DNA of 64,000 nucleotides from Anolis carolinensis (lineage: Eukaryota), in NCBI RefSeq assembly GCF_035594765.1, contig NC_085846.1:14805190-14869189 (forward strand). The letters are read 5' to 3'. Within the stretch, counting starts at the first letter, position 1, and every line of letters begins with the position of its first letter. A program made the translations under genes and the position numbers. The notes below the pieces were generated by a model. That model was not told the DNA's origin and did no database searches. It worked only from the letters and a program-made list of their open reading frames with translations. Of this stretch, positions 4,491-40,897 are shown piece by piece.

Positions 4491-5231
4491 AAATATCTTA
4501 CTTGCTTTCTCTTTTTCTCTTTGTTCCTCCTTCCCTCCTCTGTCTCACACTCAGGTTTGTCAGTCCCACACTACCAACAAAATCCAAAACAGTCTTGCAT
4601 GTCTGTTCTCAAAATTTGGTGGGGCTTCCCCATAAACCCATTTAAATGAAAATCCAAGGAGCTGGTGGGGAGAATAAGGTTTTGAAATATAATTCCAATA
4701 GATTTAGACTTCTGCTGTTTCTCCTAGAATCTGAAATTGCAATAATCCAAAGATCCCACTCCTTGTATTCCCTCCTATGAACAGCCTCACTGTGCAATAA
4801 TAACAGCTTGAAAGAACACTTGCCATGTGCTCAGCCTAAGATTTTATTAATTGTGATTCTTTTTGAAACAAGGTCACGCAGTAAATTTGTGTGGCTATGC
4901 CTCTTTTCCAAAAGAGGCTCCATGGACCAACCATCAGTATGAATTGTTTATTAAATAATCCACAGTTATTGACTACTTACACAACACCCATTCAGTCCTC
5001 CCAATTATATAGGTGTGAAGTTAGCCCGTCTCTAAAATGTGTAAATAAGGAACAAATCAGAAATCTGCACAGCATATCCACAAACTATACAGATTTGGCA
5101 GGGATGGTCCTGATTAATCCTCTGTCACCCCACTTTTTCAGCAGCTTCTGTTCTCAGCTTACTTCACTTGCTGTGAATTGAGTTCAAAGTTCAAAAGTTA
5201 ATTTGCATTCAATCAATTCCATAGCAAGAAA

Positions 5232-5500
5232 GGAGCTAGGTGGCGCAATGGGTTAAACCCTTGTGCTGGCTGAACTGCTGACCTGAAGGTTGGGCTGCTG
5301 ACCTGAAGGTTGCTGGTTCGAATCTGCGAGACAGGGTGAGCTCCCTTCTGTCAGCTCTAGCTTGCGGGGACATGAAAGAAGCCTCCCAGCTATCACATCT
5401 GGGCGCCCCCTGGGCAACGTCTCTGTAGACGGCCAATTCTCTCACACCAGAAGCAACTTGCAGTATGTTCTCAAGCCACTTCTGACATGATAATAAATAA
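5232..5500 (+). mobile_element. tRNA-derived SINE (second squamate SINE family)
   Basis: GGTGGCGCAATGGGTTAAACC head and GGTTCGAATC B box. Homologous copies at ~47840-48065 (-), ~51385-51624 (-) and ~58111-58335 (+). Confidence 0.8.
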
Positions 5501-5837
5501 GCAAGAGAGGAGGAAGGGAAATCCTGCCTTTCCTGGTAGACTCGGGCAAAATCAAACTGCTGCAGCCTCCTCTAGCTTGTGTATTCATCCCCGTTAATAA
5601 TTCTCCCCATCTTAACCACACTTTGATGTTGTTTGGCCACAAATGTCCCAGAATAGAGGAGTCTGAGGAAAGGAACCACTTGGGGACCTGCACCAGTTTT
5701 GCACAAATAAGGATGTCATCATCTCTGGCCACGGAAAGCAGATGAAGAACCAACAGGGATCCCTTAGACATATCACCACTTTCTTGCAGAGCCAGACGAG
5801 TATTAAATGGACACATCAATCTCCAAAATTGTGAGTT

Positions 5838-6013
5838 TTATGTTCTTGTCTTCCAAGTAATGACTTTTGACCACAGAGCTAAAAGGGATGTCACAGCAAG
5901 AAGCCACGTGGATGGCGAAACAAGGCAAGGAGCAGCAGCACTCTTCTGCCAGTGGGCATCTTGGTGGCAAGGCACGTGCTCGTGGAGAAGGTGCTCAGCA
6001 GAAGAATCCGTAT
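5838..6013 (-). CDS. Uncharacterised signal-peptide/leucine-zipper/membrane-anchored protein, coding exon 2 (DTDSSAEHLLHEHVPCHQDAHWQKSAAAPCLVSPSTWLLAVTSLLALWSKVITWKTRT*)
   Basis: Acceptor TCCTTTTTCTCAG|AT at 6014/6013 is phase-compatible with the exon 1 donor. His-rich linker then a C-terminal hydrophobic stretch. Stop at 5838-5840; minus-strand AATAAA at 4947-4952 and 4843-4848. Confidence 0.6.
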
Positions 6014-6169
6014 CTGAGAAAAAGGACATACCGTAGTTGGAAGTCGAAACCATAATTTGAATACAGATGTTAGCAATCAGAGCTCTACGACAATTATAAT
6101 AATGATGACTAGCATATATACACAGTATTGCGTGGGTATTGCAGGGACCACTGCTCTCTGTTTACATCC

Positions 6170-6270
6170 ATTCTTTCCCTTTCTCCCCTTCTTCCCTTCC
6201 CTTCCCTCCCTCTCTTCTCCATTTCTTTCCCTTTCTCTCTTTCCTTTCTCTTCTTCCTTTCCTTCCTTTC
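6170..6270. repeat. Polypyrimidine/polypurine low-complexity tract
   Basis: About 100 nt almost exclusively C/T on the + strand. Confidence 0.85.
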
Positions 6271-6368
6271 ATAGAGTGATAAAATAATAGAGTTGGAAGA
6301 GACCACATGGACCATTTACAAACAAACAGATATAGATATAGATATGGATATAGATATGGATATAGATT

Positions 6369-6702
6369 GGGACCCCAGGTAGTACAGTGTGTTAAAGTTC
6401 AGCTGAGCTGCTGAACTTGCGGACCAAAAGGTGCCAGGTTCAAATCCCGGGAGCAGAATGAGTGCCTGCTGTTAGCCCCAGCTCCTGCCAACCTAGCAAT
6501 TCGAAAACATGCAAATGTGAGTAGATCAATAGTTACCGCTCCGACGGGAAGGTAATGGCGCTCCATGCAGTCATGTCGGCCACATGACCTTGGAGGTGTC
6601 TATGGACAATGCCGGCTTTTCGGCTTAGAAATGGAGATGAGCACCAACCCCCAGAATCGGTCACGACTGGACTTAACGTCAGGGGAAAACCTTTACCTTT
6701 AC
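6369..6702 (+). mobile_element. Sauria SINE
   Basis: tRNA-like head, conserved body (GTGAGTAGATCAATAG...GGAGATGAGCACCAACCCCCAGA), (ACCTTT)n tail. Confidence 0.9.
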
Positions 6703-7083
6703 TATGGATATAGATATATGATACTCCACTTTTATCTCTCAATTGAGATGCAAAGAACAAAATTCCAACCACATGACCCGGTGGCCACAGTCTAAAGTGT
6801 TAGTCTCACAGATAGATTATATCTCAGGTAAGTCTTCCAAGTCCAAACAAGCTCAAAAAAACCCAATGATACTGAAAACCACTAACTTAGAGGTTCAGGA
6901 GAGTAAAGTTCATTCCAATACTCCATAAGTGATCTATCACCATGTTTGCATTCCAAATTTAGGTCTAAAACCAGACTGGAAAAGCTCTAGATAACCAACA
7001 TAAATGTACAAGAAAGGACCCTGGACAGTAAGTGTGCTAAGGAACTGGATCAAGTGCAATCCTCAGGCAGGCAAACCATAGTA

Positions 7084-7406
7084 CAGTAGAGTCTCACTTA
7101 TCCAACATAAACAGGCCAGCAGAACGTTGGATAAGCAAATATGTTGGATTATAAGGAGGGATTAAGGAAAAGCCTATTAAACATCAAATTAGGTTATGAT
7201 TTTACAAATGAAGCACCAAAACATCATGCTATACAACAAATTTGACAGAAAAAGTAGTTCATTACACATTAATGCTATGTAGTAATTACTGTATTTACTA
7301 ATTTAGCACCAAAATATCATGATATATTGAAAACATTGACTACACAAATGCATTGGATAATCCAGAACGTTGGATAAGTGAGTGTTGGATAAGTGAGACT
7401 CTACTG
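7084..7406. mobile_element. Tc1/mariner(pogo)-type MITE
   Basis: TIR CAGTAGAGTCTCACTTATCCAAC / GTTGGATAAGTGAGACTCTACTG with TA TSD. Confidence 0.9.
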
Positions 7407-8154
7407 TACTTCGGTCTTATCTGGGTTTATCTTCTGTAGCCAGGTCTCATCCAATCCATTTATATGGCCAGACACAGCTTTAGAATAAATATGAATCCCT
7501 AACTTGCATCACAACACTAAAAATCTCCGCAGGCACAGATTTTCTTGTAGATTGTTTTTATTGAATAAATGATAAATTGTTTACCAGTCAACCAAGAAAG
7601 ACACCACAGCTTGTTTGTTATCTGGTTGTAATAACAGGCCATTTACAAATACTCCCTTTTTTCTATATATATAGTGATGTATTTTTCAAAATTGCCAGTC
7701 CCTTAAACATAGATTTTCAAGATTTGTAAACAGATACTAACTCAAGGGAGACACCTATTCTTCATTAAGATATCTGATTTCAAGAGATAACAGTTCTTTG
7801 CAAGTGATGATTGTGTTCCTGTATACATTCGCATGGTGCTCTTACGTACAATTTTCAGCAGACTTGCATTACAATTATGTCTAACTAATTATCTATACAA
7901 TTAAACATATACAGAGTTTGTAAAAGTTTGCTTTTGGATATAATTTACACGAGCCTGGGCAAGCCATTAGGGTTGAGGATTCTGGGGGTTGTAGTACAAC
8001 ATAAACTTTGCTAAGATGTTTATATGCATATGAGATTGGACAATACATGCAAGTATTTAAACCTTCAGCTGCTTGCGCCGGATATGAATGAGGCAGTTCT
8101 TCGTTCTCACTATTGTTGTTGAATACTTTCAGATTGTTTTTGATCTGTCTATAT

Positions 8155-8288
8155 CAGGCGTGGGCAAACTCTGGCCCTCCAGGTGTTTTGGACTTCAACT
8201 CCCACAATTCCTAACAGCCTACCGGCTGTTAGGAATTGTGGGAGTTGAAGTCCAAAACACCTGGAGGGCCAGAGTTTGCCCATGCTTG
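8155..8288. mobile_element. hAT-type palindromic MITE
   Basis: Near-perfect 134-bp palindrome with 8-bp TSD GTCTATAT. Further copies at ~8965-9417 (split by a SINE), 13179-13308, 13835-13910, 35428-35610, 44884-45017, 46976-47109 and 52980-53160. Confidence 0.9.
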
Positions 8289-8396
8289 GTCTATATGAAA
8301 AGCAGGAGAGAAGAGGAAAGGAGGAGAGAAAGGGAAGGGTGAGAAAAGCAAAAGCTGATGATGAGAGGGACCAAATCTGGACCCAAGAGGTCTCAC

Positions 8397-8571
8397 CCTG
8401 TGATCGGTTCCATATGAAGAGCCTGAGTTCACTCAGGGCTTCAGTGAGGTTCTGGATCTTGCCTTGAAGCTGTAGGTTCTCGCTCTGTAGCTCCTCAATG
8501 GCCTCTTGCAGCTCAAAACCATGGCCCTTGCCCCACAGAAGGGACAGGAGCAGCCAGAACCTCAACTCCAT
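8397..8571 (-). CDS. Uncharacterised signal-peptide/leucine-zipper/membrane-anchored protein, coding exon 1 (MELRFWLLLSLLWGKGHG-FELQEAIEELQSENLQLQGKIQNLTEALSELRLFIWNRSQ)
   Basis: ATG at 8571, signal-peptide-like N-terminus, five Leu heptads, two N-glycosylation sequons (NLT, NRS), strong phase-1 donor CAGG|GTGAGA at 8397/8396. TATA-like GATAATTAAAAG about 110 nt upstream. Confidence 0.7.
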
Positions 8572-9031
8572 CTGCGTAGCTAGCAACCCTTCAACAGCAC
8601 CACAGTGATGAGAGGCCAGCGGGTGCACAGCGCAACTCCACTTCCCTCCCCAATCAATCAAACTGCAGAGGCAATCAATCGCTTTTAATTATCTCCCTCC
8701 TTCCTGAGCTAAAGCCTGCTGGACCTGAAAGGCCTTGAGAGTCACTTTGGGTGCATCTATATAGCAGAATTAATGCAGTTTGGTACCACTTTAGCTACCA
8801 TGGCTCAGTGCTGCGGCATCCTGGGAGTATTGTTTGGTGACGCACCAGCACTCTTGGGCAGGGAAGGCTAAAGGCTTTGCAAAAGCTATATTTCCCATGA
8901 GACCATGACCTTGAGTCACGACGGTTCAAGTAGTGTCAAACTGCATTCATTCTACAGTGTAGATCAGGCATGGTCAAACTTCAGCCATCCAGGTGTTTTG
9001 GACTTCAACTCCCACAATTCCTAACAGCCGG

Positions 9032-13439: not shown

Positions 13440-13670
13440 TGGGAAACTCCGTCAGCTCGGCTCTTTCCGAGGCGTCGGCGAAATTACCCGAGGAGAACGG
13501 GCTGTTTCCGGAAGCATCCGATCGTTCCCGTTGTGGGAAGTGAGCCTAGAGAGGCGATGTCAGTCTTTGACATCCTGTAGCGGAAAAGGCGGAGATCGGG
13601 AAGTGGGCGTGGCTTTGAGAGTGCTATAAAAGCCCCTCCCTTGGAGTAGGCCTCTCCTTTTCCGTTTCCG
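13440..13670 (+). promoter_or_regulatory. RPL28: RPL28 promoter: CpG-rich, ETS/GABP GGAAG motifs, TATAAAA (13625-13631), polypyrimidine TCT/5'TOP initiator (~13651-13670)
   Basis: CCTCTCCTTTTCCGTTTCC about 25 nt after the TATA box, typical of ribosomal-protein genes. Non-coding exon 1 donor GAG|GTAGGG at 13720/13721. Confidence 0.8.
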
Positions 13671-15079
13671 GTCGCGGCTGAGGGAGGATAGAGAGCAGCA
13701 GGCCTCGTGTTTGCCGGGAGGTAGGGAGGCCTGATGGCGGTCTTTTTTTTTGATGGGTGGAGGAAGAATCCCAGGTTTATATAGCATTGAGCCGTTGCAG
13801 TTAAAGTGGTGTCAAAACGGCATTCACTCTACAGCAGGCATAGGCAAACTTGGGCCCTCCAGGTGTTTGAAGTTCAAAACGCCTGGAGGGCCCAAATTTG
13901 CCCATGCCTGCTGTAGAGTGTAAACGCACCCTAGGCTTCGAATCCCCTCTCGGCCGTGGAAACCCACTGAGTGGCCTTGGGAAAGTCACGCTCTCTCAGC
14001 CTCATAGAGAGGCAAAGGCCACTTACCTCTGAACAGATTCTGTCTAAAACAAAACAGTAACCCAGAAAGTCCTTAAAGGCACGTAACAACATGGCTGTAC
14101 ATCAGAGCTTTCCCATTTGTGAGTCGCTTGTAATCCACAGACGTGTCGTCCCCACAAACAAAGGCTGTCTGGCACAGTCTATGCTCTCCCGACAGATGGC
14201 CATCCAGCCTCAGCTCAAAAATCTCTAGAGAAGGGACTCCATTGGACTCCTGGGCAGTCCATATTTCCCTAGAGTTGGAAGGAATAATAATATACTTAAT
14301 CTACTTTATTTATATTCTACTCTATCTTATCGAGGAGACTCAGGGTGGATTACAGAATACATATATGGCAAACATTCAATATGGTTATACAGGCAACAAG
14401 GACAGATAATACATAGACAGGCGTAAAGGCTTTTGCCTCTGTCTATATATCCCCAACCGGCATCTAGTCCAACCCCCAACAGACAGATGGGGACACACAG
14501 TCAAAGCCCTTCCAACAGATAGCCATCTAGCCTCCCATTTAAAATCATCCAGAGAGATTTAATCCTTACAGAAGAGGAATGCTAGTGCTTTTCAAGTGTA
14601 GGTACTGTTATAACTTCTAATTGGCACAATTTGTTGATTGAGTTGCAGTAATCACTAAAATTGATAAGTTTTTAATTAAGAAAAGAAAATATGTTGACAA
14701 TGTTTTTGATGAACTGCATGGAGCGGCTATAGAGGAAACTACACAAGAATCAAATGTAAAGGAAAAGTTTCCAAACTTTGTTTACAGTAAAGGTTATATG
14801 AAACTTGCATATTTTATATTTTAACTTGAAAATGTATGATTATATTTTATACTACATCTATATTGTATGAAACTCTTATAAGGGTTTGGTTTTGCCTCAA
14901 GTTTTCAAGATGAACTAAATTACCAAGCTGCAAAATAATATAATAACACTTTATTTATATTCTGCCCTTCTCCCTGAGGGGACTCAGAGCAGATTACAGC
15001 ATATAAACAGACACAGGCAAGCATTCAATGCTTTGTTGCAATGAAATACAATGAGACAAAAACACGTAAAAGGCAGACT

Positions 15080-15395
15080 TCTCATTTCATTTCTGGCTCT
15101 GGAGGCGGTGCTCATCTGTGGCTCTGGGGGAGGTACTCTTCTCCATTTTCAAACCGAGGTGCCTCCTGGTCATGTGGCCAGCATGGTTGAATGGAGCGGG
15201 TTTTTTTTTTTTGGTCTTTTCCCGCTAAAGCAGTACCTATTGATCTACTTACATTTGCATGTTTTCAGACTGCTAGGTTGGCAGGTTCTAGGGCTAACAG
15301 TGGGAGCTCACTCCATCTTGTGAATTCGAACTGCCAACCTTCAGGTCAGCACTTTAGCAGCACAAGGGTTTAACCCATTGTGTTACCACGACCCC
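15080..15395 (-). mobile_element. Diverged Sauria SINE in RPL28 intron 1
   Basis: Homology to the SINE body (ACCTATTGATCTACT...TTTGCATGTTTT). Confidence 0.75.
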
Positions 15396-16200
15396 TTAGG
15401 GTTCATGTTTAAGAAGTGTGTCACCAAGATGGAAAGTTTGGAAAGCTCTGCTGTTCATGGTGCTTTACAAGTAAAAGAATAGCAAAACAATTCCCATGTC
15501 TGTGCCTGTGAGCTACATTTTTTTTTCCTTTCTGGAAAACTCATCAGTTTGACTGGCACTACTGTAATCCAAAATGTTCTGAAATTTGTAAAGGTTCGTA
15601 GTAATTTACAAAGATAGCACGTGTGACAGGTCTCCCACTTTAGGATTGTAATCTAAAATACAATGACTAAATTAAGATACTTACAGAATGATCAGTCCTG
15701 TCCAGTTGTATTAGGCGCAGAGCAGAGAGTAATGAAAGGCTGTTTCATGGTTTCAGAACTTTTATTAGTAAAAATTCTTTAAAAGTCTAAAGCTGTAGTT
15801 TTTGAACAAGGTTTCCCATTTCCTTTCCTCCAACCACACAAATTGGTTGTGTCAATTTGCTGTTTAGTAGATATTGAAGAGGAAATGAAATTATTCTGTC
15901 AGCATTTATCAGAAGAGATAATGATGTGCAAACAAATTTTTAATAAGTGTATTGGGAGGCAAGATTATAATTTAGAGGTAAAAGGGAAATAAGAGTAGCA
16001 GCATAGAAGCAGAAATCAGTTTAGTAAGGACAAGATAAATTAATAAAAACTCAAGAATGCTCAGCCAAACGTTTTGATTGAGGTGTGGTAATTTGTGGGA
16101 ACAGGACATGTGTTATATGGGTATGACCTTTTGAGCCTGATTAAAATACACAAAAATAATGAATTATTGCATGGCTTCTTCCTGTCCAGGAACCTGCACA

Positions 16201-16281
16201 ATGTCGGCCCATCTACAATGGATGATTGTGCGCAACTGCTCAAGTTTCCTCATCAAAAGGAACAAGCAAACGTACAGCATG
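16201..16281 (+). CDS. RPL28: 60S ribosomal protein L28 (eL28), coding exon 1 ([27 protein letters not shown])
   Basis: Near-identical to the vertebrate RPL28 N-terminus. Acceptor at 16189/16190, donor ATG|GTGAG. Confidence 0.97.
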
Positions 16282-16461
16282 GTGAGACAGAACTCCTTTC
16301 TCTTGTGAGCAAGACTTGATTTTTAGTATGCCTGGCTGAAATTGCAGTTTCTTTCCTAAGGGATTCAGCAATCCTGGATTCTTACCCCCCGTTTTCATAT
16401 GCATTTCCACTTTGAAATGTGTGTATGAAGTTCTGATAAATGATCTCTTGTTTTTTCAAAG

Positions 16462-16585
16462 GAACCCAACAACCTTAAAGCCCGCAACTCCTTCCGCTAC
16501 AATGGACTGATCCATCGTAAGACGGTTGGGGTGGAGCCAGCTGCTGATGGGAAGGGCATCGTTGTGGTCCTGAAGAAGCGTGCAG
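16462..16585 (+). CDS. RPL28: RPL28 coding exon 2 ([41 protein letters not shown])
   Basis: 124-nt exon, canonical AG/GT, conserved peptide. Confidence 0.97.
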
Positions 16586-16989
16586 GTAGGTTTTTAAGAT
16601 CTTGAAATGGATGTCAAATTGAAATTGGGACCCTGGGATGTTGAATTGAGATGGGGCACATGGCAAGCACAGTTTTTTAAAATATCAAATTAAAGTGACA
16701 TTCTGTTGCGTAGATGGTATAAGGGGATGGTGGATACAGGCTTACCAGTGAGCGAGTTGCATTAACCATATCCGTGTCTTTAAATAATATTTCCGATGGT
16801 GTTCAGTGTGCCTAAGGATCACTAAAATAATGAATTTGAAGCACAAAAACTTTTATGCCTGCAGTATTTGCGGTATGCACATTTTTTGCAAGACTCTTGG
16901 CCACTGTTCTTGAATTTGAGCTGCCACCTCTTCAGAGATTCTTGAGTCTTCTGCCTTTGCATCCTAATCTCCTGGCTCCCTTCTTGCAG

Positions 16990-17108
16990 GTCAGCGGAAG
17001 CCAGCAACTTCTTATGAGAAGATTACCATCAACAAAAATGCACGTGCCACTCTCAGCAGTCTCCGCCACATCATCCGCAAGAACAATTACCGCAAGGACC
17101 TGCGCATG
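16990..17108 (+). CDS. RPL28: RPL28 coding exon 3 ([40 protein letters not shown])
   Basis: 119-nt exon, canonical splice sites. Confidence 0.97.
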
Positions 17109-17877
17109 GTAAGACGGATCCCTCTTTGTTTTCTTGGTTGGTAGGTTTATGCTGTCTTGGTAACCAAAATAATTCAGTAAGCATAGAGTGGTGGTGTATC
17201 AAACAAAAAGATTTTTGGTTTTAATGTTTAATGACTAAAGGCCAAGGGAAAGTTAATTGCCACCCAAGAGACTGAATATTTGTGAGTGAGGAATAAGGTG
17301 CTTGTGTTTATATCATTTATCCAGGGAGTGATATATCTAAGTTCTGGTCTTTGGAGAATTTCAAGAAAGAAAGAACGCATTGTAGTCAATTGGTACTCAC
17401 TGATTTGACATATTGAAAAAATATTGCTGGGCCCAAATAGATGAAAAAGCACTGATGTAGGCTGGATCTACACTGCGATATAATCCAGTTTCAGAATGCA
17501 GATTAAATGCCTTGAACTGAAATGTATGAGTCTACACTGCCATATAATCCAGTTCAATGCAGTTAATTTGCATTCTGAAACTGGATTATATGGCAGTGTT
17601 GATGGGGGGTCGTAAACAACTTCTGTTTCATCTACTTTGGAAGGACTTAGACTATTGATGAGAGTATAGCTTTAAAATACCTGGCCCTATAATGAGGTAT
17701 GAAATTATTTTTAAGTGGGAAATTATTTGGTATACTTCAGCTTTTCTATCTTTGATCATCTCTGCAGGCTAGATGAGGTTGACTTTGAGATAATTTGTCT
17801 TTTAACAAGAAACCTCAAGGTTCATAACCCATCCCCAGGTTCAGTCCATTCATTTTTCCTCTTCTTTCTCCTCCCAG

Positions 17878-17967
17878 GCTGCCTTGAGACGCGCCAGTGC
17901 AATTCTACGCAGCCAGAAGCCAGTGGTGGTGAAGAAGAAGCGGACCAGGGCTACTAAAGCTGCATAA
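17878..17967 (+). CDS. RPL28: RPL28 last coding exon (AALRRASAILRSQKPVVVKKKRTRATKAA*); total CDS 414 nt = 137 aa
   Basis: Polypyrimidine acceptor, TAA stop, AATAAA at 17988-17993. Confidence 0.97.
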   Translation, partial: AALRRASAILRSQKPVVVKKKRTRATKAA

Positions 17968-19001
17968 ACATAGTTGCCAGATTTTCCAATAAAGGATCCG
18001 AACTAGAGTACGTGGTGGCTGAGTGGCGTTAATAAATAACTAATGGGGGATTTTCTTTCTTTTCCAGAAAAATATTTTTAGTTATCATTTTGTTTGAAGA
18101 TGGGATTCCCCCTCCAAACATACACATTTTTCCAGTTGGTTTCATAAAATTGTTGATTTGGGATTAGAGCCAGAGTAGTTGAAATGCAAGCAGCCTGTAA
18201 AGCTATCTCCTGTGGTTTGCTTTCTGCTATTGAAATGCCTTCAAATTGACGCTGACTTACAGTAAACCTATCATCGAGTTTTCTAAGTAAGATGTGTTCA
18301 AAGTGGGTTTGCAATAGCTTACTTCTGAGGCTGAAGGAGTATAGCTTGCCAAGATCACCCAAAGAGGGTGTTCATGGCCAAGAAAGGATTAGAAACCTGG
18401 TCTCTCAGAATCTTTATCCAATATTCAAACTGCTGTACTACATTGTCTTTCTGTAAGTAGGCGAGAGTGTGACTTGCCCAAAGTCATACACACACTGGGT
18501 TTCCAAAATGAAAAGACTCTGATCCTAGTATTCTGAATCCTAATCCAACATTCAGAGCCTTACACTCTGATGTCTATTTCCAAAAGCACACACTTCTCCC
18601 ATCTGGTATGGTCTCTGTCAACTTTCCCCCCTAATAATCTTTGAACGTGATTTTCCTGCTTCTTGGCAGGGGGTTGGACTGGATGGCCCGTGAGATCTCT
18701 TTCGACTCTATGATTCTATCTGTTTTTATGATTATAAAGACTTCGAACTGGTTTAAAACAAACACAAAGGTCCCAAGAATGAGTTTTTATAGTGGATTTA
18801 TACTGCATTAATTTAATGTAAAATCACTTTGTAACCCACCCTGTAAGGATAGGGCCAAGACAACATGCCATGTCTAGGTTGTGGTGAACAGAAAAAAAAT
18901 GTTTTATTACTATATTGTGATATAACCAGAATTCAATATCAGTTTCTATCTATTGGGCTTTGTTTTCATATCTCATGGAATAATTGTTTAATTGCCTCTG
19001 C

Positions 19002-19019: not shown

Positions 19020-19475
19020 AAGAGCTGAAGAAAGTTCAGATTCTGACTACCATTTCATCCCTTCTTCCTGCCACATAACTTTTGACTACAGATAGCTTAT
19101 GTTTAACAGCTTCTTTACAACACCACTTTTAACTGGTACTTACTTGGTATGAATTGCCTCTCTATCCTACCATGCTGAATCTGGAATAGGCATTGCTGTC
19201 AATTCAGAAACTGTTCCGAGCTGGCTTTGCTGCAAATGTTCTGTTCTGCATCCTTAAAAGTGCATCTGTTCCCAGCCTTACAAGCTTTTCATTTTTAATA
19301 CTGCCCTCATGTTTTAAGGCGTATATGTACTGCCAGGTGTAGGACATGAAAACATTCAAAATACATGAGATTATGATCTGTTCCCCTACTCACAGAAATA
19401 CAAAATCTGACAATAAAAGCAGAGGGTTGTTGTATGTCTTTCGGGCTGTGTGGCCATGTTCCAGAAGCATTCTCT

Positions 19476-19516
19476 CCTGACGTTTCGCCCACATCTATGG
19501 CAGGCATCCTCAGAGG
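19476..19516 (-). ncRNA. Minimal hammerhead ribozyme motif, intact core
   Basis: Exact reverse complement of 23101-23141. Confidence 0.8.
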
Positions 19517-20055
19517 TTGTGAGGTATGGATAAACTAAGTAAGGAAAGGAAAGAATATATATCTGTGTCCAAGGTGTGGCAAGAGTCCTTTGTCACTGGG
19601 AGCCAGCATTAATGTTTCAGTTAATCACCCTAATTAGCATTGGAGATGTTTTGTCCCTTGCCTGGGGGCATCCTTTGTTCAGTCAAGTCCTCATTGTGTT
19701 GGTTCCCATCTACTGTTTTGATTTTGGAGTTTTGTAATACTGGTAGCCAGATTTTGTTCATTTTCATGGTTTCTTCCTTTCTGTTAAAGTTGTCCACATG
19801 CTTGTGGATTTCAATGGCTTCTCTGTGTAGTCTGACATGATAGTTGTTGGAATGGTCCAGCATTTTTGTGTTCTCAAATAGTATCCTGTGTCCAGGCTGG
19901 TTCATCAAATGCTCTGCTATGGCTGATTTCTCTGGTTGAATTAGTCTGCAGTGCCTTTCATGTTCTTTGACTCTTGTTTGGGCGCTGCGTTTGGTGGTCC
20001 CTATGTAGACTTGTCCACAGCTGCATGGTATCCGGTAGACTCCTGCAGAAGAGAG

Positions 20056-20378
20056 GGGAAGTCATAGGGAGGAGGGAGCAAGCTTATTTTCTGCTGCCCT
20101 GCAGACTAGGACACGGAACAATGGCTTCAAACTACAGGAAAGGAGATTCCACCTGAACATCAGGAAGAACTTCCTCACTGTGAGGGCTGTTCGGCAGTGG
20201 AACTCTCTCCCCCGGGCCGTGGTGGAGGCTCCTTCTTTGGAGGCTTTTAAGCAGAGGCTGGATGGCCATCTGTCGGGGGTGCTTTGAATGCGATTTCCTG
20301 CTTCTTAGCGGGGGGTTGGACTAGATGGCCCTTGAGGTCTCTTCCAACTCTACTATTCTATGGTTCTCTATGATTCTA
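20056..20378 (+). mobile_element. CR1 LINE 3' fragment inserted into the left Penelope arm
   Basis: Nearly identical to 50730-51060, ATTCTATG tail, short AGAGAG-type duplication at the junctions. Confidence 0.9.
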
Positions 20379-21310
20379 TGAGAGAGGATCCCTCTTGTCC
20401 TTCGCTGACCGTAGCATTTGTTGGATTTTCTTCGTGGGTCTGTAGATAGTTTGTAGGTTGTGCTTCTTCATCAGCTTCCCTATGCGGTCAGTAGTTCCCT
20501 TGATGTATGGTAAGAACACCTTTCCTCTGGGTGGATCTTTGTCTTGACTCTCATGGCTTGTTCTTGCCCTTGCAGCTCTTCTGATGTCTGTGGTGGAGTA
20601 TCCATTGGCCTGTAGAGCCCAGTTTAGGTGGTTGAGTTCACCTTGGAGGAGGTGAGGTTCGCAGATTCTTTGTGCACGGTCTGTCAGGGCTTTGATTGTG
20701 CTCCTTTTTTGACTTGGGTGATGGTTGGAGTTTTTATGAAGGTATCTATCTGTGTGTGTAGGTTTTCTGTAAACTGTGTGGCCCAATTGTTGATTGGGTT
20801 TGCGGATGACCAGAACATCTAGAAATGGCAGTTTTCCTTCCTTTTCTTTTTCCATGGTGAATTGGATGTTTGGGTGGATGCTGTTAAGATGGTCCAGGAA
20901 CTTGCTGAGTTCTTCCTCTCCATGGCTCCAAATTGTGAAGGTGTCATCTACGTATCTGAACCAAACAGTTGGCTTTTTTGGTGCTGTTTCTAGGGCCTGT
21001 TTTTCAAAGTATTCCATATAGAAATTTGCTACTACTGGGCTGAGAGGGCTCCCCATGGCCACTCCATCCTTCTGTTCATAGAATCCAGTGTCCCACTGAA
21101 AGTAGCTAGTGGTGAGGCAATGGTGAAACAGGGCTGTGATGTCTTCTGGGAAGTTTTGTTTGATTAGTGTGAGGGTGTCAGCTACTGGGACTTTGGTAAA
21201 AAGGGACACCACATCAAAGCTGATCAGGATGTCCTTGGTGCTTAGATTGAGGTTGCTGATCTTTTCTATAAAGTGTGTAGAGTCCTTGATATAATGTGCA
21301 GTGAGCCCAA
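20376..21310 (-). pseudogene. Inverted, CR1-interrupted copy of the Penelope RT ORF (GIY-YIG part continues at ~20055-19630)
   Basis: Translation matches the 549-aa ORF except D/N at KRDPL vs KRNPL. Confidence 0.9.
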
Positions 21311-21337
21311 GCTGACAAGGGGAATGCCACAGTAATC

Positions 21338-22987
21338 ATGGAAACAAAACAATACAAGGAAAAAATCAGACAACTTCTAGATCCCACAATTTACAAGAAA
21401 CTGAAACAAGACCCCACTAACAAAATCACCAGAAAAACGAACACTCTAATCAAGAACTCCTCCATTAACTTTGACATACGCCAACAGCTGTGCAAATCAG
21501 AAGCCCTCCCACCCAGGCTTTACGGACTCCCCAAAATCCACAAGGACTCCATCCCACTCAGACCCATTGTAAGTGCCATTGGATCGCCGACTTACAACCT
21601 GGCAAAATTTCTGGCTACACAGCTACAAACCCACATTGGGCTCACTGCACATTATATCAAGGACTCTACACACTTTATAGAAAAGATCAGCAACCTCAAT
21701 CTAAGCACCAAGGACATCCTGATCAGCTTTGATGTGGTGTCCCTTTTTACCAAAGTCCCAGTAGCTGACACCCTCACACTAATCAAACAAAACTTCCCAG
21801 AAGACATCACAGCCCTGTTTCACCATTGCCTCACCACTAGCTACTTTCAGTGGGACACTGGATTCTATGAACAGAAGGATGGAGTGGCCATGGGGAGCCC
21901 TCTCAGCCCAGTAGTAGCAAATTTCTATATGGAATACTTTGAAAAACAGGCCCTAGAAACAGCACCAAAAAAGCCAACTGTTTGGTTCAGATACGTAGAT
22001 GACACCTTCACAATTTGGAGCCATGGAGAGGAAGAACTCAGCAAGTTCCTGGACCATCTTAACAGCATCCACCCAAACATCCAATTCACCATGGAAAAAG
22101 AAAAGGAAGGAAAACTGCCATTTCTAGATGTTCTGGTCATCCGCAAACCCAATCAACAATTGGGCCACACAGTTTACAGAAAACCTACACACACAGATAG
22201 ATACCTTCATAAAAACTCCAACCATCACCCAAGTCAAAAAAGGAGCACAATCAAAGCCCTGACAGACCGTGCACAAAGAATCTGCGAACCTCACCTCCTC
22301 CAAGGTGAACTCAACCACCTAAACTGGGCTCTACAGGCCAATGGATACTCCACCACAGACATCAGAAGAGCTGCAAGGGCAAGAACAAGCCATGAGAGTC
22401 AAGACAAAGATCCACCCAGAGGAAAGGTGTTCTTACCATACATCAAGGGAACTACTGACCGCATAGGGAAGCTGATGAAGAAGCACAACCTACAAACTAT
22501 CTACAGACCCACGAAGAAAATCCAACAAATGCTACGGTCAGCGAAGGACAAGAGGAATCCTCTCTCTTCTGCAGGAGTCTACCGGATACCATGCAGCTGT
22601 GGACAAGTCTACATAGGGACCACCAAACGCAGCGCCCAAACAAGAGTCAAAGAACATGAAAGGCACTGCAGACTAATTCAACCAGAGAAATCAGCCATAG
22701 CAGAGCATTTGATGAACCAGCCTGGACACAGGATACTATTTGAGAACACAAAAATGCTGGACCATTCCAACAACTATCATGTCAGACTACACAGAGAAGC
22801 CATTGAAATCCACAAGCATGTGGACAACTTTAACAGAAAGGAAGAAACCATGAAAATGAACAAAATCTGGCTACCAGTATTACAAAACTCCAAAATCAAA
22901 ACAGTAGATGGGAACCAACACAATGAGGACTTGACTGAACAAAGGATGCCCCCAGGCAAGGGACAAAACATCTCCAATGCTAATTAG
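21338..22987 (+). CDS. Penelope-like reverse transcriptase + GIY-YIG endonuclease ORF (5'-truncated; frame open from 21311, ADKGNATVIM)
   Basis: RT motifs YGLPKIHK, LRPIVS, SFDVVSLFT, GVAMGSPLSP and RYVDD; endonuclease GVYRIPCSCGQVYIGTT...EH...EH. Confidence 0.95.
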   Translation: METKQYKEKIRQLLDPTIYKKLKQDPTNKITRKTNTLIKNSSINFDIRQQLCKSEALPPRLYGLPKIHKDSIPLRPIVSAIGSPTYNLAKFLATQLQTHIGLTAHYIKDSTHFIEKISNLNLSTKDILISFDVVSLFTKVPVADTLTLIKQNFPEDITALFHHCLTTSYFQWDTGFYEQKDGVAMGSPLSPVVANFYMEYFEKQALETAPKKPTVWFRYVDDTFTIWSHGEEELSKFLDHLNSIHPNIQFTMEKEKEGKLPFLDVLVIRKPNQQLGHTVYRKPTHTDRYLHKNSNHHPSQKRSTIKALTDRAQRICEPHLLQGELNHLNWALQANGYSTTDIRRAARARTSHESQDKDPPRGKVFLPYIKGTTDRIGKLMKKHNLQTIYRPTKKIQQMLRSAKDKRNPLSSAGVYRIPCSCGQVYIGTTKRSAQTRVKEHERHCRLIQPEKSAIAEHLMNQPGHRILFENTKMLDHSNNYHVRLHREAIEIHKHVDNFNRKEETMKMNKIWLPVLQNSKIKTVDGNQHNEDLTEQRMPPGKGQNISNAN

Positions 22988-23100
22988 GGTGATTAACTGA
23001 AACATTAATGCTGGCTCCCATTGACAAAGGACTCTTGCCACACCTTGGACACAGATATATATTCTTTCCTTTCCTTACTTAGTTTATCCATACCTCACAA

Positions 23101-23141
23101 CCTCTGAGGATGCCTGCCATAGATGTGGGCGAAACGTCAGG
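23101..23141 (+). ncRNA. Minimal type-I hammerhead ribozyme motif, intact core; predicted cleavage after C23138
   Basis: Stem I CCU/AGG, CUGAGGA, stem II GCCUGC/GUGGGC, GAAAC, GUC; self-complementary ACGU in stem III. Confidence 0.8.
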
Positions 23142-25456
23142 AGAGAATGCTTCTGGAACATGGCCACACAGCCCGAAAGACATACAACAACCCTGTGATC
23201 CCGGCCATGAAAGCCTTCGACAACACAATAAAAGCAGAATTGCCATGGTAATTTATGTCTTATTGCGAGGCAAAACGCTTAGTCCACTATTGAGAGGCAG
23301 TGTTTGGTTTTGTTAACTGCTATCAAACTGGTTTCCAAATTTTAGCGAACTCAATTTGAGACCTCCAAGTGACTTTGTCATCAACATGTCTTGCAGGATG
23401 TTAATTCCTTGACTGAGTCTAGCCATCTATAATGCAGTCTTTTTCTACTGCTTTCCCCTTTGCCAAGCTTTATGGTCTTTTCTAGTGAATTATTCTCTCT
23501 AAAAATGTGATTTCTAGGGCTAGCTTGGGCTCAAATTGCTCTAGGACCCATTTATACTTTTCGCATTCCAAGGTTAAATGCAGAACTCTCCTCCAGCAAC
23601 ACATCTCAAATGAATTTATTCTCTTTCTAAATTACCTTTATTGTCCAGCTTTCATGATCATACATAAAAAATGGAAATACAATGACATAAACAACCCTTA
23701 CTGCTATTTAATGATATATATTTTAGACTTGTCCAGTTCTATCCTGGCTGCCCTTCGGATTTCCTAGCTTTCTGCTTTCTTGAAAGCAGTCTCCATTTTG
23801 TTTTTTTCATAATTAAGTCAAGGTATAGTAAACCTATGATTACCTTGATGTCTTAATTATTTGCTTGAAAGTTATGTAAGTAATAGTAGTCATTGTTTTT
23901 AGTTTCTTAGTGGTCAGGTATAAGCCTGATATAGACCTTTCATCACTGAATTCCTTCCCTAATCATTCCAAGTCTTTCTTTTTTCTGCTAGTAGTATATT
24001 ATTGTTTGTATATCTTTTAATGTTGACGCAACTTCCTCCAGCTTTCATACCTCCATGTTCTGTTAACCCGCAGCAGCTTTGAGCATAAAGCTTAACCTGA
24101 GAGGTAATGATTTCAGGCTTTAAGGATTGAGTGAGATGCTTCAGCAAGGGACATCTTTGTCTTAAGTGGAATACCATTATAGTTTTGACTCTTAGATTGC
24201 CTCATGCCCTTGAGAAACACATTTTCCTAAGTAATTGTCCCTCTATGTTAGTGGAAGGCTTGTGTCTAAAGGATACAAAAGAAATCTGTAGAGGATAAAT
24301 GTAAGGAAGGGAGAGGGACACCCAACAGGAAATGAGATTTGAGTCCTGTGAGGTTGTGCAAAGGGGTGGTGTATACACAGTGGGGGAAGTTAATATTTGG
24401 ATCTGTTAGTGGTTCAGCAAAGATCAAGTTGATAACAGGAGTGGCAAAACTGTCTTGCCCTATGTTATACTGCTGCAGCTAAAAAGAAAAATAACCCGCT
24501 CTAAAGCTGATATTCTTGATAACATTCTTGGATACATGGATACCTTGCTTCTAAGGGCCCTTCCACACAGCCATATAACAAAATATCAAGGCAGATAATC
24601 CACAATATCTGCTTTGAACTCTGTTATCTGAGTCTAGACTGCCATATATTCCTGTTCAAAGCAGATAATATGAGATTTTATTCAGCTGTGTGGAAGGGGC
24701 CTCGGAGTGCATCTTGCAGAATGAACGCAGTTTGACACTTCTTGAATAGCCATGGCTCAATGCTCTGGAATCCTGGGAGCTGTAGTTCGATGACGCACCA
24801 GCACTCTGGCAGAGAAGACCTTGTAGAACTACTAGTTCCATGATTTCATAGAGTATGGTAGTTAAAATAGTGACAAAGGTATTGATTAAACTGTGGATGC
24901 ACCCTACATCTATTTCTTTTTCCTGGCTTTGTCAGCCTCCTAAATGGTCCCAACAGAAATAAAAGCCATTCCTTGCTTCTTTTTCCACCTTAACAATCAG
25001 GTATCCATATACTGGGCCTCCTAGGTAGGCCAGCAAGGGGAGAAAAGCCTACTCACTTTCCACTTGTGAGAGGTGTGAAGGAGTGTCATAGATCAAGGAT
25101 CAGAAAGATGGACCCACTACAAAATATTGAATTCATCAACGGGAAGCCCTTCTCTCCCTCCCTGCATCCCTTCCAACTCTCTTTGTAAGTGATCTAAATG
25201 CGTGCTTGGGCCAAAGGAACCTAATGCGCAGCAGGGCACTGGCAGGCCTCCGGCTGACCCCAGGAGGCTATTTGAAGGCACAGACTGACGCTATTTTCTG
25301 ACTTTTCCCCTGCACTGCCCTCATCTTTTCACCCTGGTATCACAACTGACCTGGCTTCCAGCAGGACGGGGTGAATTGGTCTCCTTCCCAATGAAAGTCT
25401 AATTTCTAGTATAGTGTCTTCTTTTGCTCTTGTTTTTGTGCCTTTCTAGAAACACT

Positions 25457-28660: not shown

Positions 28661-29014
28661 TCATATGGCAACTGTGTTTGCTTCTGCCTCTCCCACCAGT
28701 ATGGTCCAGCTGCCGCACCGCTTCCGCTGCCTGTACTGCTGCCAGGCACAACTGGTGGCCACCCCAAGGACCCCCGTCCCCAGCAAGATCCACCCCAACA
28801 CGGATAACACGGATCCAGGAGGGTCGCGAGCACAGGCCACGCTGGTGGCTGCCAATCCGATGATGCCAAGCACCAGTCCGAAGGGAAGCAGGCATTCCCG
28901 GCAGGATGCCTCCACGCCTCCGGTGGTGGTGCCGATGAGGCCCAGGCGTGATGCTGTGCGCTCCAGACACACTTCTTCCCGTTCTATGTTCACTGTCACA
29001 CGATCGTACGGCAT
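28661..29014 (-). CDS. TMEM100-family two-pass membrane protein (divergent paralogue), 117 aa, single coding exon
   Basis: TTGGVEASCRECLLPFGLVLGIIGLAATSVA...GSVLSVLGWILLGTGVLGVATSCAWQQYRQRKRCGSWTILV aligns with recalled TMEM100 (ATGGTELSCYRCIIPFAVVVFIAGIVVTAVA...GSIISIFGLVVLSSG...KRRESQTALV). Acceptor TCTTCTTTCACAG| at 29046/29045, 31 nt before the ATG. Confidence 0.85.
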   Translation of the reverse strand: MPYDRVTVNIEREEVCLERTASRLGLIGTTTGGVEASCRECLLPFGLVLGIIGLAATSVACARDPPGSVLSVLGWILLGTGVLGVATSCAWQQYRQRKRCGSWTILVGEAEANTVAI

Positions 29015-40516: not shown

Positions 40517-40897
40517 ATGGGCAATAGCAAGAGCGGAGCTCTATCCAAGGAGATCCTGGAAGATCTGAAGCTGAACACCAAGTATTCGGAAGATGAGCTT
40601 TGCAAATGGTATGAGAGCTTCCAGAAGCAATGTCCCGATGGGCGCATCAGCCGGTCTGAGTTTGAAAAGATCTATGCCAACTTCTTCCCCAACTCTGACC
40701 CCAAGGTCTATGCCCGGCACGTCTTCCGGAGCTTTGACACCAACGATGATGGGACCCTAGACTTCCGGGAGTACATCATTGCGCTCCATCTCACCTCCAC
40801 CGGCAAGACCAACCTCAAGCTGGAATGGGCCTTCGCACTCTTTGATGTGGATCGCAATGGAGAGATCAGCAAGCATGAGGTTCTTGAGATCGTCGCA
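40517..40897 (+). CDS. Visinin (cone recoverin paralogue, neuronal calcium sensor), coding exon 1
   Basis: Myristoylation motif MGNSKS, EF-hands DTNDDGTLDFRE and DVDRNGEISKHE. QCPDGRI, YARHVFRSF and LKLEWAF match recalled chicken visinin better than recoverin. 381-nt exon, donor GCA|GTAAGT. Confidence 0.95.

Follow-up and report, generated by a model that had tools for sequence, protein, structure and literature searches.

A conserved two-exon gene beside RPL28 in Anolis carolinensis encodes a predicted GPI-anchored leucine-zipper protein without a described family

Small proteins held at the cell surface by a GPI anchor are known as a class that includes neuritin, prion/Shadoo and Ly6. The leucine zipper of C/EBP-beta forms a parallel dimer, and in GCN4-type zippers an asparagine buried at an a position sets the register of the two parallel chains. 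Leucine at the d positions with isoleucine or asparagine at the a positions favours dimers in GCN4 and in designed coiled coils. Tetherin (BST2, CD317) begins with a cytoplasmic tail followed by a transmembrane anchor near the N-terminus, continues as an ectodomain comprising a coiled coil, a glycan, cysteine and a GPI-type C-terminus, and is subject to positive selection (PMC7764263).

The gene described here lies in a window of 64 000 nt of the A. carolinensis genome (contig NC_085846.1, positions 14 805 190 to 14 869 189; all coordinates below are those of the window). Its predicted protein resembles the small GPI-anchored proteins in having a signal peptide, a small, probably glycosylated ectodomain, a candidate omega site and a hydrophobic tail, but its ectodomain is nothing more than a leucine zipper with one cysteine and no Pfam family of the class is matched. 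Like the bZIP zippers (C/EBP-beta and GCN4), it has leucine at d, asparagine at a and, in matching register, an E-N motif; it differs from them by the absence of a basic DNA-binding region and by its secretory topology. An extracellular coiled coil with a predicted glycan and a cysteine is common to tetherin, and the C-terminal sequence fits a candidate GPI-type signal, whereas the present protein has only five heptads, places its cysteine in the stalk and starts with a cleavable-looking signal peptide.

The gene is read from the (−) strand. Starting at the 5′ end, coding exon 1 (8397..8571, 175 nt) carries the signal peptide in codons 1–18 and the leucine zipper in codons 19–58, and terminates with a phase-1 donor. 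There follows a repeat-rich GT..AG intron of 2383 nt (6014..8396) with a pyrimidine tract, after which coding exon 2 (5838..6013, 176 nt) continues with a His/Cys stalk, an omega-like site, a hydrophobic tail and the stop. The summed coding length is a multiple of three, giving 116 codons and the stop. The likely 3′ UTR (4947..5837, (−)) contains a high-copy repeat at ~5190–5480 and an AATAAA at 4952–4947. Upstream of the start codon, a block at 8645..8705 (−) that is kept in four squamates is a candidate promoter or 5′ UTR element; its AT-rich motifs (ATTAA, ATTGATT and TGAT-GATT) look like homeodomain sites.

Sequencing contigs from four runs of different studies, out of 24 and presumed to be RNA, were placed on 4600–9000. 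A 741 nt contig of run X10 aligns without gaps, letters 1–191 with 8587–8397 and letters 192–741 with 6013–5464, and a 720 nt contig of run X11, which is from a different study, contains the same 8397/6013 join. The junction matches to the base the splice of the original prediction, in which two exons were joined through a phase-1 intron, and the coordinates, frame and GT..AG boundaries agree with it. Because the contigs are without exactly the GT..AG intron, and the unique intronic bins are empty, they indicate spliced mRNA. Pieces from runs X4 and X9 span the acceptor unspliced, which fits pre-mRNA or DNA. Contigs of X10 cover 5464–6013 and 4960–5244, with X10 depth absent below ~4894, and contig coverage stops near the AATAAA at 4952. 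Two variants are seen in exon 1, one a synonymous change and the other I39V. Four further squamates have kept the two exons as well.

The predicted signal peptide (8518..8571, (−)) has a hydrophobic core of ~11 residues, the best 19-residue window reaching only 0.7, and would be cleaved after Gly18, before a conserved F/Y-E-L-Q start. Family-wide, position −1 is S, G, A or T in 87% and position −3 is S, G, C or A in 93%, figures that, in common with all the family column percentages, are weighted towards teleosts. Conservation starts abruptly at the F/Y. The small residues at −3 and −1 together with this abrupt start are typical of signal peptides that are cleaved, and the signal peptide thus looks cleavable throughout the family.

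The five-heptad zipper (8398..8517, (−)) follows directly. The d positions are Leu21, Leu28, Leu35, Leu42 and Leu49, and the a positions of the Anolis model are Ile25, Asn32, Ile39, Leu46 and Ile53, exactly as had been proposed from the sequence. The zipper includes an invariant Glu31-Asn32. Two sequons had also been noted, and both (N41 and N55) are present in Anolis; only N41-x-T43, which lies within the zipper, is nearly universal in the family. In the AlphaFold model of the Lerista orthologue, made for one chain and having no bearing on oligomers, the zipper is one long helix (pLDDT 94–96), after which come a linker modelled with low confidence and a helix at the C-terminal end.

Exon 2 encodes a stalk with histidines at 66, 69, 71, 75 and 79 and with Cys74 (5967..5969, (−)), the sole invariant residue of the exon (100% in 46 full-length members) and a candidate for an inter-chain disulfide. 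Beyond it, Ser83-Ala84-Ala85 (5934..5942, (−)) is a candidate GPI omega site, with S in 78% and A in 84% of the aligned family columns. The original prediction had correctly counted the five histidines, Cys74 and the S-A-A, and had overlooked a second cysteine (88) in the tail region. The C-terminal hydrophobic segment (5871..5906, (−)) would be a GPI signal or a short membrane anchor. Across the family the tail comprises an S-A pair after the cysteine, then a spacer and a hydrophobic stretch, with 30–36 residues from the cysteine to the C-terminus; a median of 3 residues follows the hydrophobic stretch, and there is no cytosolic domain. The Anolis tail has 42 residues after Cys74 (30–36 in the family alignment, none longer) and ends in a short basic extension, features that are less typical of a GPI signal. 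The signal peptide, the zipper with its a-position asparagine, the glycan site and the C-terminal anchor are nonetheless all conserved across the family. An N-terminal signal peptide pattern combined with a small-residue omega site, spacer and hydrophobic tail without a cytosolic domain is suggestive of the GPI class, and a GPI-anchored coiled coil is the probable anatomy of the protein.

Relatives were sought exon by exon, with the Lerista protein P0002 standing in wherever a full-length sequence had to be searched or folded. Exon 1 found matches in Lerista, Varanus and a skink-like contig. P0002 was annotated independently with the same two exons as in Anolis, and a search with it added Gekko. 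A profile of exon 1 gave 25 matches among 1.84 billion representatives, 23 of them belonging to this family and including the frog Ascaphus, the shark Chiloscyllium, Arapaima and Etheostoma. P0010 and P0013 are unrelated repeats and were excluded. A wider profile matched 143 proteins at E ≤ 0.001, and nearly all of the best 120, which were those listed, are named hypothetical or uncharacterised. The orthologues come from a monitor lizard, skinks, a gecko, a frog, many teleosts and one shark; among the database members are those of Lerista (KAJ6653287.1), Ascaphus (MEE6483218.1), Chiloscyllium (GCC17494.1), Etheostoma (KAA8584430.1) and Arapaima (‘uncharacterized protein LOC106585304’). The initial view that the protein had no recognisable homologue therefore holds for characterised families, none of which matches, but not for homologues as such, which are abundant from shark to squamates. 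The gene belongs to an unnamed ancient family and is not a singleton, and its sequences are already public as automatic predictions. No mammalian member was present among the 135 proteins inspected, 120 of the 143 matches of the wider profile being listed; small two-exon genes are under-annotated, and a loss in mammals is no more than a possibility.

Several gene models require correction. Unrelated automatic names are attached to three members, DnaK (Varanus), Fucolectin-2 (Dissostichus) and histidine-rich glycoprotein-like (Lates). The name DnaK was rejected, as the annotated exon 2 of the Varanus model (KAF7238782.1, L001 10001–12160) is wrong and unrelated, the true exon 2 being at L001 14031–14186. 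The models for Gekko (P0004) and Arapaima (P0008) start at the wrong place and have spurious N-terminal extensions.

Teleost members form two paralogue groups, starting FELQ or YELQ, as would be expected from the teleost genome duplication. Teleosts have an extra third exon, located in the middle, that is rich in His and Glu and ends in W-x-x-W (L007 10775 onwards, L008 10812–10883 and L013 10762–10824). Some gene models skip it, and within a single species one model may include it and another not (P0037 and P0040). This exon was not found in the squamate, frog and shark loci or in the Anolis intron. A diverged member is carried by very GC-rich contigs (L010–L012) that, from their composition only, may be those of birds; exon 2 of L010 and L011 has the same one cysteine and hydrophobic tail. 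Locus L009 contains another amniote-like member. Exon 2 was not found in L009 or L012.

Purifying selection on the zipper is strong. Among squamates its dN/dS is 0.036–0.050 (dS ~1.1, dN 0.04–0.05), 33 of its 40 residues are invariant in four squamates and 19 of the 40 are identical to shark. For the opening 20 codons of exon 2 dN/dS is 0.23–0.31, and drift in the signal peptide is much faster. L21, L28, E31, N32, L35, T43, L46 and C74 are invariant in the 46 full-length members. When nine lineages are balanced, conservation by register is 0.96 at d, 0.76 at a, 0.73 at c, 0.69 at e, 0.67 at g, 0.58 at b and 0.53 at f. Even b, c and f, which are exposed, lie at 0.53–0.73.

RPL28 (13500..18010, (+); ATG at 16201) accompanies the family as its constant syntenic marker, adjacent to the zipper gene in six of seven genome loci. 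The two genes are arranged head-to-head in Anolis as first described, with the qualification that their starts are ~5 kb apart, that of RPL28 being CpG-rich and near 13.5–14.0 kb, which is too far for a tight bidirectional promoter. The divergent arrangement is also found in Varanus, Lerista and Gekko (L001, L002 and L004). In shark, Arapaima, Etheostoma and Phoxinus (L006, L007, L008 and L013) the genes are in tandem, with the zipper gene downstream, and a local inversion is thus implied. In every genome locus, shark and lizard alike, the phase-1 intron is located 40 codons past the conserved Phe. A GSG1-family gene comes next after the zipper gene in the three squamates and in L009. The frog locus has no other called gene within 10 kb. 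In fish the RPL28/zipper-gene block adjoins Sec16- or peptidase-M16-family genes.

Elsewhere in the Anolis window there is a single-exon ORF of the TMEM100 family (28661–29014, (−); Pfam PF16311, 56.8 bits, above cut-off), the first exon of a recoverin-like EF-hand protein (40517–40897, (+)), a ubiquitin-conjugating enzyme gene read as UBE2S, and reverse-transcriptase-like ORFs in an inverted arrangement at 19400–23240. The TMEM100-like, GSG1-like and recoverin-like neighbours resemble the GSG1L2-RCVRN-PIRT block found elsewhere in vertebrate genomes, and the Anolis region may be an old duplicate that keeps extra paralogues. These neighbours in lizards hint weakly at a neural or sensory role for the zipper gene.

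Searches for a described counterpart gave generic coiled coils only. Pfam, scanned with 21 members, and NCBIfam returned only sub-threshold coiled-coil matches. A PDB sequence search (E ≤ 5) gave weak generic zippers, the closest solved structures being those of C/EBP-beta (a weak E of 0.006–0.05). The ESM Atlas contained no usable match by features for the Lerista or Etheostoma members, and by shape gave only generic helical matches, which are uninformative for a single helix. A literature search on the gene identifiers and the conserved motif, with most subscription journals outside its scope, found nothing relevant; names for the zebrafish or chicken locus are possible. A bZIP transcription factor was rejected, as there is no basic region, a hydrophobic signal peptide precedes the zipper and bZIP_1 scores 16 bits against a cut-off of 27.6. 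The likeness to bZIP is at the level expected from the common heptad pattern. TMEM238, given in the original prediction as the human gene at this position, is a protein with two transmembrane helices; the architecture differs and there was no TMEM238 match in Pfam. We regard the family as an undescribed one within the known class of small GPI-type surface proteins, with a type of ectodomain unmatched in that class.

A possible course for the protein can be followed from these features. The signal peptide would be cut before Phe19, Asn41 would be glycosylated and the tail would be exchanged for a GPI anchor near Ser83. Two mature chains of ~65 residues would then form a parallel coiled coil with leucine at d and isoleucine or leucine at a, except for the one buried asparagine, which would set the register of the dimer. 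The invariant single cysteine would form an inter-chain disulfide locking the two chains together. The result would be a rod of ~5–6 nm on a short flexible stalk, with the free N-termini outermost from the membrane. Because the exposed positions and the free N-terminus are conserved along with the core (33/40 across squamates), the rod would most likely bind a specific protein partner, either another extracellular zipper or a receptor. Its role would then be that of a ligand tethered to the membrane, a co-receptor or an accessory subunit, and not that of a passive spacer. Taken as a whole, this disulfide-linked, GPI-anchored parallel dimer with a partner-binding rod is put forward tentatively, at a little short of an even chance.

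The dimer itself is plausible from the heptad pattern. A homodimer is not assured, since the e and g positions offer few complementary charges (they are Ala, Thr, Gln and Ile, thus small or apolar) and the weak Pfam matches include trimeric coils (TolA_bind_tri and betaPIX_CC). The zipper also has a net charge of −2 to −5 in all nine lineages. With the same topology the chains might instead assemble as trimers, as higher bundles or only as heterodimers with another chain, and serve as a scaffold that clusters membrane microdomains or matrix proteins. A single cysteine pairs most simply in a dimer, however, and the d and a residues are in the dimer-favouring pattern, and we consider this arrangement unlikely.

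The nature of the tail bears on a second alternative, in which it is a short but true transmembrane anchor, or the chain is shed as a secreted peptide ligand. The Anolis tail ends in Lys/Arg and its best 19-residue window has a mean hydropathy of 1.58, as such an anchor might. The other squamates and fish end 0–7 residues past the hydrophobic stretch and hold the spacing between the cysteine and the S-A site constant, which is the pattern of a GPI signal and makes a transmembrane or shed form fairly improbable.

The linker had been proposed as possibly sensitive to pH or metal, and a third alternative makes this the function, with the histidines near the cysteine and the His-rich exon of teleosts binding Zn or Cu, or switching the coil in acidic compartments. 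H66 is conserved in 93%, H79 in 78% and H71 and H75 in 69% of the teleost-weighted columns, and teleosts add histidine inside the zipper to their His/Glu-rich middle exon. Against this, H69 is conserved in only 4% and it is the cysteine that is invariant; the middle exon was not found in the squamate, frog and shark loci and some fish models leave it out, the lizard zipper has no histidine and exon 2 of the GC-rich orthologue L010 is likewise free of it. Since only part of the cluster is conserved, sensing of pH or metal is weakly supported, and as the function of the protein it is decidedly improbable.

The comparison with tetherin made in the original prediction does not survive. An antiviral tether of that kind would retain the N-terminal stretch, so that two anchors flank the coiled coil. 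The coiled coil, glycan, cysteine and GPI-like tail do resemble the BST2 ectodomain (PMC7764263), but the short hydrophobic core, the small residues at −3 and −1 and the sharply conserved start after the core, all judged from the sequence, speak against an N-terminal anchor. The zipper protein has no cytoplasmic tail, BST2 was not matched in Pfam (21 members) or the PDB (E ≤ 5), and a dN/dS of ~0.04 stands against the positive selection of BST2. The likeness thus fails in three respects, the N-terminal anchor, homology and the mode of evolution, and a tetherin-like function is very unlikely. Finally, chance ORFs or a non-coding transcript are refuted by the splicing, the orthology and the dN/dS and carry practically no probability, while the zipper gene and its family are almost certainly real.

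A gene that has stayed in the same neighbourhood in sharks and lizards, with a dN/dS of ~0.04, and for which no name, Pfam family or paper was found, is a rare gap in the inventory of vertebrate cell-surface proteins. Its tiny size, its two or three exons and its frequently faulty gene models, as in Varanus, Gekko and Arapaima, may explain the oversight. The broadest reading is of an ancient jawed-vertebrate family, perhaps lost or unrecognised in mammals, in which a bZIP-style extracellular zipper acts as a GPI-tethered ligand or co-receptor for a specific partner; this is possible, although doubtful in its entirety. The zipper family is readily testable in fish, frog or lizard. If mammals are really without the gene, it would be one more ancestral surface protein lost in mammals, and pairing of the zipper with a specific partner, if it occurs, would be an extracellular use of bZIP-type recognition.
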